Notes: generated by a model not told the origin, from the sequence alone. DNA of 64,000 nucleotides from Histomonas meleagridis 2922-C6/04-290x (GCA_020184695.1 JAANOX010000098.1:283491-347490); one strand, 5' to 3'. Shown: positions 34,232 to 34,849, counted from the first letter of the stretch. Made by a program: numbers and translations.

Positions 34232-34849
34232 TTACTCAACCTTGACTTTGAAGCACTTTGGTGGGATTGACTTTGTGCAGAGCTTGCGATAGCGTTCTCC
34301 GTCGTTTGTAACTTCATCGATAACATCGACAACCTTCTTTGTTTTGTCAACAACGTCCTTAACCTTCTTGATGATCTTCTTGATCTTGAATTTGTTAGCA
34401 TCGTTTTCGTCTTCAACAAGTTCGTAGTAAACTTCTACATCTTCATCATCGTTTGTAACTTCATCGATAACATCGACAACCTTCTTTGTCTTGTCAACAA
34501 CATCCTTAACCTTCTTGATGATCTTCTTGATCTTGAATTTGTTAGCATCGTTTTCGTCTTCAACAAGTTCGTAGTAAACTTCTACATCTTCATCATCGTT
34601 TGTAACTTCATCGATAACATCGACAACCTTCTTTGTCTTGTCAACAACATCCTTGACCTTCTTGATGATCTTCTTAAGTTTGAATTTGTTAGCATCAGTT
34701 TCATCTTCGACAAGTTCGTAGTAAACTTCTACATCTTCTTCGCCATCATTGTAGAGGACTGGGAAGTCTGGCTTTGGGTAAAATGGCATTGGTGTTGGGA
34801 ATGTAGTTGGGATCTTGATAGATCTTAAAGCTAAGAGAGCAAAAAGCAT
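34232..34849 (-). CDS. secreted multi-peptide precursor (3 x 49-aa repeats; C-terminal Bowman-Birk/SFTI-like loop)
   Basis: Short signal MLFALLALRS; Pro-rich segment; three 147-nt repeats of DEDVEVYYELVEDENDAN-KFKIKKIIKKVKDVVDKTKKVVDVIDEVTND; tail GERYRKLCTKSIPPKCFKVKVE. Biased codon use (aag, gtc, gac) suggests high expression. Confidence 0.85.
   Translation of the reverse strand: MLFALLALRSIKIPTTFPTPMPFYPKPDFPVLYNDGEEDVEVYYELVEDETDANKFKLKKIIKKVKDVVDKTKKVVDVIDEVTNDDEDVEVYYELVEDENDANKFKIKKIIKKVKDVVDKTKKVVDVIDEVTNDDEDVEVYYELVEDENDANKFKIKKIIKKVKDVVDKTKKVVDVIDEVTNDGERYRKLCTKSIPPKCFKVKVE

Follow-up and report, generated by a model that had tools for sequence, protein, structure and literature searches.

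Analysis of a 64,000-nucleotide stretch of Histomonas meleagridis 2922-C6/04-290x DNA (JAANOX010000098.1:283491-347490; here called the window, from whose first letter all window positions are counted) revealed an uninterrupted open reading frame (ORF) on the minus strand at 34232-34849. Its translation is a protein of 205 amino acids with the C-terminus ...VTNDGERYRKLCTKSIPPKCFKVKVE, followed by the stop codon, and close to this end lies a nine-residue ring, CTKSIPPKC, that corresponds to the reactive loop of plant Bowman-Birk inhibitors and of the sunflower peptide SFTI-1. Exactly this protein is encoded on JAANOX010000098.1 and gene-called in GCA_020184695.1, one of the two H. meleagridis genomes of Palmieri et al. 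(PMC8529796). The gut parabasalid suspected as the source in a first-pass annotation, which was made from the sequence alone, is therefore H. meleagridis. The C-terminus read in that annotation (VTND-GERYRKL-CTKSIPPKCF-KVKVE) was recovered by the ORF translation with exact coordinates, Cys191 to Phe200 occupying precisely 34250-34279. The precursor has a net charge of -9, with 37 Lys and 49 Asp plus Glu, and contains two Cys, which are the two loop cysteines. The features of the locus are listed below; P0001 and P0015 are paralogs described further on.

34232-34849, minus strand: whole gene, 205-residue precursor, stop codon (34232-34234) included
34253-34279, minus strand: nine-residue loop CTKSIPPKC, Cys191-Cys199, fitting the Bowman-Birk motif C-T-P1-S-x-P-P-x-C
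34271-34273, minus strand: Lys193, predicted P1 residue by alignment to SFTI-1 and Bowman-Birk loops, with Lys193-Ser194 as the scissile bond
34235-34303, minus strand: C-terminal tail D183-E205 (DGERYRKLCTKSIPPKCFKVKVE), net charge +4, predicted beta-hairpin
34304-34393, minus strand: Lys-rich peptide 3, K153-N182, preceded by Asn152, last residue Asn182
34451-34540, minus strand: Lys-rich peptide 2, K104-N133, preceded by Asn103, last residue Asn133
34598-34687, minus strand: Lys-rich peptide 1, K55-N84, preceded by Asn54, last residue Asn84
34302-34738, minus strand: tandem array found by repeat detection, 3.0 copies of a 147-nucleotide (49-residue) unit with 96% matches
34751-34819, minus strand: Pro/Thr-rich linker, residues 11-33, read from the sequence and ended by Asn34
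34820-34849, minus strand: residues 1-10, MLFALLALRS, a short hydrophobic N-terminus with a small residue at position 10
34850-34862, minus strand: TCAAATTGCCAAA, directly upstream of the ATG and identical upstream of paralogs P0001 and P0015, a candidate initiator or 5' untranslated region (5'UTR) element
34212-34231, minus strand: 20-nucleotide 3'UTR with the poly(A) addition site at 34212; a TAAA overlaps the stop codon

The Bowman-Birk family motif has been defined as CTP1SXPPXC and its frog variant as the 11-residue CWTP1SXPPXPC (PMC7760496). A degenerate DNA pattern for C-T-K-S-I-P-P-x-C matched the window once, at 34253-34279 on the minus strand, and had no match in 100 shuffles. Alignment of the Histomonas sequence LCTKSIPPKCFK with RCTKSIPPICFP from pro-SFTI-1 (PDB 2ab9) revealed identity at 9 of 10 positions, as the first-pass annotation had claimed. 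When the 30-residue tail was compared with all PDB chains by sequence search, 15 of the 16 matches were Bowman-Birk or SFTI entries and pro-SFTI-1 was the best; the individual E-values were weak (>= 0.24), which is expected for a nine-residue motif. The matches included the mung bean fragments CTKSIPPEC and CTKSIPPQC as well as the soybean-type variant with Asn at P2', ACTKSNPPQC; Ile and Asn at P2' are both natural Bowman-Birk variants. The Pfam Bowman-Birk family (PF00228) was the sole family matched by the window tail (E 0.005, 17.5 bits) and by the tail of P0015, and one of two weak matches for the tail of P0001. Its scores (13.9 bits for the full protein; 17.5, 8.1 and 13.4 bits for the three tails) were all below the gathering cut-off of 20.4 bits, and the alignment was confined to profile positions 7/8 to 16/17 of 25 (8 to 16 for the window tail). 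The PDB search, the motif definition and the PF00228 match agree with the earlier description of the ring as an exact plant-type Bowman-Birk/SFTI-1 reactive loop. Because the score is below threshold, the cysteines number 2 to 4 instead of 14 and the loop alone aligns, the protein is classified from its sequence not as a Bowman-Birk family member but as a separate, new lineage bearing the same loop.

The protein belongs to an unnamed Histomonas/parabasalid family of Lys-rich peptide precursors. Word-based homolog searches gave few members, and an exhaustive profile search over 1.84 billion representative proteins revealed 12 (E 4.5e-82 to 1.3e-4). Seven of the 12, with two more from their 90% clusters (nine in total), are annotated as hypothetical proteins of H. 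meleagridis and lie on different contigs; the other members come from ENA and Logan metagenome assemblies. All members have a conserved N-terminus, a linker rich in Pro, and spacers that are acidic; an invariant Asn precedes K-F and a Lys-rich amphipathic segment, and the tail contains Cys. Conservation within the family is highest at the N-terminus (consensus M[LFI]FALLAL[RK][ST], also given as M[LF]FALLALR[ST]I), and the window gene has this N-terminus together with an acidic spacer, the N-K-F Lys-rich module and a Cys-containing tail. The family tails are hypervariable, with a Bowman-Birk-type loop in some only. The tail of P0001 (GPJ56_005646) reads ...RRCHEI-CTKSIPPVC-TKRCLSI and that of P0015 (GPJ56_004566) ...KRCRKL-CTKSNPPVC-RTVCYIS. 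Thus, three loop-bearing H. meleagridis paralogs on different contigs, a number that is a lower bound, keep C-T-K-S-[I/N]-P-P-x-C. Conservation of the motif, on which the first-pass annotation had made its proposal depend, was accordingly found among paralogs, in two further genes, instead of among the orthologs that had been envisaged.

Comparison of P0001 and P0015 revealed how selectively the loop is kept. Codons 1-135, the body of the precursor, are 97% identical at the nucleotide level (10 synonymous and 1 non-synonymous changes; dS 0.13, dN 0.003), and identity falls to 53% in the 14 codons before the loop, returns to 96% in the 27 nucleotides of the loop, where the Ile/Asn codon is the sole difference, drops to 29% in the 7 codons after it and reaches 72% in the first 50 nucleotides of the 3'UTR. 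The ratio of non-synonymous to synonymous changes is 26:8 in the tail and 1:10 in the body (Fisher p = 1.2e-4). The loop is therefore a strictly conserved island, and the flanks on both sides of it have changed more quickly than the non-coding DNA nearby. Such a pattern of sequence change fits a functionally essential loop with unusually fast-evolving flanks; diversifying selection on the flanks is one possible reading of it. A tail swap by recombination was judged an unlikely source of the flank divergence, because the loop between the divergent patches and the 3'UTR beyond them stay homologous.

Other tails of the family were also inspected. Ten-residue, non-canonical rings occur in P0009 (CPKSISPIGC; L115:4001-4375) and in P0004 and P0013 (CVRDSISRIC). 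Both share K/R-S-I features with the Bowman-Birk loop, and their sequences suggest that they may be evolutionary relatives of it. A second recurrent tail type with four cysteines, C-x2-4-C ... [KL]-C-P-x-x-C-Y-[AIT], was observed in P0003, P0005, P0007 and P0008, from H. meleagridis and metagenomes; it had no match in Pfam, and these tails may form a separate class of hairpin peptide.

The amino acid composition of the window predicts the motif 2e-6 times per window, 1.5e-3 times per 45-Mb genome and about 0.5 times over 250,000 windows, so a single occurrence could be explained by chance over the latter number. Chance is excluded because two paralogs keep the loop at the same position though nearly all flanking residues differ. 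The degenerate pattern was also searched against a metagenome collection, where it matched 109 stretches, about the number expected by chance according to our own estimate of its degeneracy. By manual count, about 28 of these were in-frame matches in real ORFs, all of them classical Cys-rich and apparently plant Bowman-Birk genes, and the remaining matches, about 80, were chance hits that lay out of frame or in very short ORFs. Members of the parabasalid family were absent from the 109 stretches. One of them, L084:373-753 (metagenome contig Ga0308185_1008154), carries a 297-residue ORF with three tandem Bowman-Birk heads, each CTKSIPPIC, at a spacing of 177 nucleotides; the GC content of this contig is 63%, far above the values of the remaining Bowman-Birk loci (25-34%, with one at 57%). 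A 17-residue mini-ORF, RRTRF-CTKSIPPHC-RNT, recurred in six marine contigs (L005, L017, L028, L067, L099 and L106); its most likely source is a conserved gene read in another frame, rather than a peptide.

Structure prediction placed the loop at the tip of a hairpin. The full-length AlphaFold2 model was poor (predicted local distance difference test score [pLDDT] 47), with values of 76-80 for residues 181-205. A tail-only AlphaFold2 model built from the three loop-bearing tails reached a pLDDT of 83.7; in it, strands E185-C191 and C199-V204 form a beta-hairpin in which R-Y-R-K-L-C pairs with C-F-K-V-K-V and T-K-S-I-P-P-K connects the two. In this model, the topology is that of the SFTI-1/Bowman-Birk hairpin. 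A Foldseek search of the tail model against the PDB returned generic beta-hairpins only, none with E <= 0.001, this method being uninformative for a 35-residue hairpin. Since the AlphaFold2 model and the ESM Atlas model (pLDDT 0.43) were both poor outside the tail, no fold is claimed for the repeats. In P0001 and P0015, a second pair of cysteines lies four residues outside each loop cysteine (C-x3-C-loop-C-x3-C). Its placement would suit a second cross-strand disulfide, stabilizing the hairpin where SFTI-1 uses backbone cyclization.

To follow transcription, public runs labelled H. meleagridis (RNA runs including X3, X4 and X5, and a DNA run) were aligned to positions 32000-36500. Positions 34212-34330 are represented in RNA run X3 by a contig of depth 2930, which on the plus strand terminates in 22 T. 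This end is the poly(A) tail of a minus-strand mRNA, and the coding sequence of the tail, the expression of which had been in question, is therefore part of a polyadenylated transcript. The RNA depth of the neighboring MA3-domain gene was 22-43, and the roughly hundredfold contrast suggests a very abundant message, contig depth being a poor measure of expression. The bin 34114-34264, which is mostly intergenic, had a depth of 0 in RNA runs X4 and X5, whereas the DNA run covered it to a depth of 491, and the RNA libraries therefore behave as such. Within the gene, the aligned runs showed neither sequence variants nor splice joints.

The same alignments revealed two features of the neighboring transcripts. 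One RNA contig per run (depth about 270-890) covers 34738-35739 on the minus strand, running collinearly from the 5' part of the gene across a 690-nucleotide "intergenic" stretch into an upstream ORF of 109 residues (35541-35870); it could represent a long 3'UTR, read-through or an unannotated transcript. At the adjoining histone H4 gene (33763-34083, plus strand), an RNA contig ends in 22 A at 34083, which corresponds to a polyadenylated mRNA with a 15-nucleotide 3'UTR. Compared with the window, the H4 contigs carry single-position differences (e.g., A>T at 33816 in every aligned contig of the four runs and C>T at 33969 in most), which may reflect multiple H4 copies.

Several properties of the precursor bear on its secretion and processing. 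Residues 1-10 are a candidate signal peptide by their sequence, and a comparably short one, of 11 residues, is reported for the demonstrably secreted legumain-2 of Trichomonas vaginalis, TvLEGU-2 (PMC10892250). Beside paralog P0001, an ORF at L001:6996-7406 starts with a classical long signal peptide (MKKTLLLLPFFALIVNC...), and conventional signal peptides therefore also occur in this genome. The nearest neighbors of the protein in a language model were secreted multi-peptide antimicrobial precursors of the apidaecin, bombinin and dermaseptin type, with weak scores of 0.53-0.63. Each 49-residue unit of the tandem array consists of an acidic spacer and a Lys-rich amphipathic segment; the repeat-2/3 form of the Lys-rich peptide has a net charge of +5 and a helical hydrophobic moment of 0.49, and the commoner module type of the family has +11 and 0.50. 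A Pfam match of residues ~44-190 to EntA_Immun (enterocin A immunity) was rejected as a probable repeat or composition artefact. Its score exceeds the gathering threshold (30.2 versus 22.1 bits) because three Lys/Val-rich repeat matches of ~40 residues add up.

All nine Asn of the window protein stand at module boundaries, that is, behind the linker, directly ahead of every K-F start, at all ...VTN ends and inside the spacers, and none lies inside the Lys-rich segments or the tail. Across the family, 78 of 109 Asn are in boundary contexts, compared with a mean of 26.8 and a maximum of 42 in 2000 shuffles, and several family tails are directly preceded by ...E-N. The Histomonas exoproteome contains three cysteine proteases, one of which is a C13 legumain, and no serine protease was found in it (PMC6391000). 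A legumain, an enzyme that the first-pass annotation had noted for trichomonads, is thus present in Histomonas itself, and Asn brackets every module. With Asn at the module boundaries and a legumain in the exoproteome, Asn-directed release of the peptides by legumain is plausible; a role of the boundary Asn as helix caps is the alternative.

The inhibitory capacity of such loops is documented for closely similar peptides. The disulfide loop CTKSIPPICF alone inhibits bovine trypsin with an inhibition constant (Ki) of 0.5 µM (PMC8410836, Table 1), and the same loop with linear, non-cyclized tails has Ki values of 0.055-0.6 µM; deletion or replacement of the P1 Lys abolished inhibition (PMC8410836). 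The only difference between this peptide and the Histomonas sequence is at P5', a variable position, and Lys at the corresponding second variable loop position is common in frog inhibitors (PMC7760496). Because these near-identical peptides inhibit, we strongly infer that the oxidized Histomonas tail would inhibit trypsin as well; by analogy, trypsin inhibition by such a loop is very plausible.

Comparison with known systems revealed likenesses at the level of the loop and differences in the surrounding protein. The plant Bowman-Birk inhibitors (PF00228, MEROPS I12) share the disulfide-closed nine-residue C-T-K-S-[I/N]-P-P-x-C with P1 Lys, and the loop occurs letter for letter in mung bean and soybean-type inhibitors. 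However, the Histomonas proteins come from a protist and an unrelated precursor and do not have the double-headed Bowman-Birk scaffold of 14 cysteines and seven disulfides, with two cysteines in the window protein and four in the P0001 and P0015 tails. SFTI-1, which is part of the PawS1 preproalbumin, is likewise a single-disulfide mini-hairpin within a larger precursor unrelated to Bowman-Birk proteins; besides the identity over CTKSIPPxCF, an Asn just upstream in Histomonas suggests a similar legumain-type release. In contrast to PawS1, no albumin domain was found in a Pfam scan of the Histomonas protein, the peptide lies at the extreme C-terminus, and P0001 and P0015 add a second Cys pair at i-4 and j+4. 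Head-to-tail cyclization as in SFTI-1 is unlikely and not expected, because in the three tails the residues after the loop (FKVKVE, TKRCLSI and RTVCYIS, each ending at the stop codon) include neither Asn nor Asp. The frog-skin inhibitors (MEROPS I99) are short linear peptides that form hairpins with one disulfide; they have cationic tails, the Lys of their TKS-x-PP is the P1 residue, and they are made alongside cationic antimicrobial peptides. Their precursors have a signal peptide and an acidic spacer, a layout that the Histomonas precursor would share. They differ in lineage, in precursor family and in their ring of 11 residues (C-W-T-K-S-x-P-P-x-P-C), whereas the Histomonas ring has 9 and carries neither the Trp nor the extra Pro. 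Antimicrobial precursors of the apidaecin, bombinin and dermaseptin type also have tandem acidic spacers and cationic peptides behind a conserved N-terminal region, but they have no sequence homology to the Histomonas family, the boundaries of which are Asn instead of dibasic or dipeptidyl sites, and they serve as leads only.

Taken together, the observations probably reflect a convergently evolved, secreted canonical trypsin-type inhibitor loop carried on a multi-peptide precursor. In the proposed mechanism, a highly expressed secretory precursor of a parabasalid-specific family would consist of a very short signal peptide, a Pro-rich linker and three modules of acidic spacer and Lys-rich amphipathic helix, and the Asn-bracketed modules would be cut by the secreted legumain of the parasite. 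The C-terminal 23 residues would fold as a beta-hairpin, with the disulfide-closed Cys191-Cys199 loop as its tip and Thr at P2, Lys at P1, Ser at P1', Ile at P2' and Pro-Pro at P3'-P4'. Trypsin-like S1 serine proteases would be inhibited by the standard (Laskowski) mechanism, the oxidized loop occupying their active site like a substrate. The targets could be avian pancreatic or immune trypsin-like enzymes, or bacterial ones; they are probably exogenous, because Histomonas secretes mainly cysteine proteases and no serine protease was detected. Lys-rich peptides are ideal trypsin substrates, and one likely benefit would be protection of the trypsin-sensitive Lys-rich peptides of the same family; shielding of the co-encoded peptides by the loop, as proposed in the first-pass annotation, is plausible. 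The best overall reading of the likely role is a secreted cocktail of lytic peptides and a canonical trypsin-type inhibitor directed against host or bacterial S1 proteases. The fuller proposal, that a protozoan independently evolved the Bowman-Birk/SFTI-1 loop as the invariant tip of a diversifying hairpin within a legumain-processed, frog-skin-like cocktail that combines lytic Lys-rich peptides with a shield against proteases and acts in the caecum and liver of the bird, is tentative, with slightly less than an even chance of being correct.

A number of points weigh against a secreted inhibitor loop. The sequence, the paralog conservation, the transcription and the predicted hairpin are in hand; inhibition, the disulfide, secretion, processing at Asn, the mature peptide ends and the targets are what we infer. 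The whole-tail dN/dS by Nei-Gojobori is ~0.84 and not above 1, and codon bias may contribute to the nucleotide identity of the loop at synonymous sites. All three loop-bearing genes are paralogs of one species, and the metagenomic relatives carry other tails; because most family members have unrelated Cys tails, the tail position is compatible with other functions, and a reason other than protease binding could account for the retention of the loop. Such a reason would exist if the tail were mainly a membrane-active or target-binding cationic beta-hairpin in which TKS-x-PP is just a rigid cis-Pro turn and inhibition is incidental. This explanation, the main rival but one that we consider unlikely, is consistent with the charge of +4 and the alternation of hydrophobic and basic residues in the tail, with the Cys hairpin-like peptides that lack the motif in other family tails, with the antimicrobial-peptide precursors among the language-model neighbors, and with the tail-dependent antibacterial activity of frog and engineered peptides bearing the loop (PMC8410836, PMC7760496). 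However, a turn needs no Thr, Lys or Ser, yet all three are fixed in the three paralogs at the conserved Bowman-Birk positions; the flanks, to which antibacterial activity is tied in the cited peptide work, are hypervariable, and it was loss of the P1 Lys that abolished trypsin inhibition in peptide experiments (PMC8410836). The putative signal peptide is also unusually short (~10 residues), and the protein might not be secreted at all, its N-terminus being a hydrogenosomal or other targeting signal, or none, and its reduced cysteines serving an intracellular function of the motif. The N-terminus starts with ML, has only ~8 hydrophobic residues and continues with Arg9 and Ser, and this ML...R-S start loosely resembles a hydrogenosomal presequence, as trichomonad presequences have Arg at -2. 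A search of the surfaceome paper's supplements for accessions of the family gave no match; the exoproteome would probably miss such peptides, because it relied on tryptic digestion and 3-10 kDa filters. Nevertheless, matrix presequences are far less hydrophobic than the LFALLAL core, a combination of acidic spacers with cationic amphipathic peptides and paired cysteines is typical of secretory peptide precursors, and 11-residue signal peptides occur in secreted trichomonad proteins (PMC10892250), which makes an intracellular protein improbable.

The origin of the loop was likewise considered, the first-pass annotation having left it between convergence and transfer. Host birds may eat legumes, and a plant Bowman-Birk gene could in principle have been acquired laterally, e.g., from legume feed in the bird gut; the ring is of the nine-residue plant type and not the frog type of 11 residues, and both Ile and Asn at P2' are plant variants. 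Such a transfer is nonetheless very improbable. No other part of a Bowman-Birk domain is present, the PF00228 match is partial and below threshold with 2-4 Cys instead of 14, the loop stands in the native tail position of the family, paralogs carry CPKSISPIGC and CVRDSISRIC, and the codon choices of the loop resemble the rest of the gene (as judged by eye). Because there is no scaffold beyond the loop, the tail position is normal for the family and paralogs have related non-canonical rings, convergence within the family is judged from the sequences to be much more likely than transfer from plants. Least credible is a chance resemblance without functional meaning. The expectation of about half an occurrence over 250,000 windows and the ~80 chance matches among the 109 metagenome stretches would allow it, but the paralog comparison effectively refutes it, since three paralogs keep the motif amid hypervariable flanks. 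In addition, the motif belongs to the terminal part of the reading frame of an expressed gene, and the two cysteines that enclose it are the only ones in the protein.

A literature search found no paper linking Bowman-Birk inhibitors or CTKSIPP with parabasalids (Trichomonas, Histomonas) and none mentioning GPJ56_005646; within the library searched, the papers with CTKSIPP all concerned SFTI-1 or plant and frog inhibitors. If confirmed, a secreted and convergently evolved inhibitor loop would add another convergent origin to that of the legume/cereal inhibitors and, provided that they arose independently, to those of SFTI-1 and the frog-skin peptides. The presence of the exact ring of nine residues in a parabasalid, where it stays invariant while its flanks are hypervariable, would illustrate clearly how molecular evolution can converge on a loop that is optimal for binding proteases. 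The natural variants with two disulfides (C-x3-C-loop-C-x3-C) would provide new stabilized scaffolds for the peptide engineering that is now built on SFTI-1. For H. meleagridis, an important poultry pathogen for which we know of no licensed treatment, the finding points to an unrecognized, very highly expressed effector family, and it suggests how the parasite could keep its Lys-rich secreted peptides intact in the trypsin-containing gut or blunt the serine proteases of its host.

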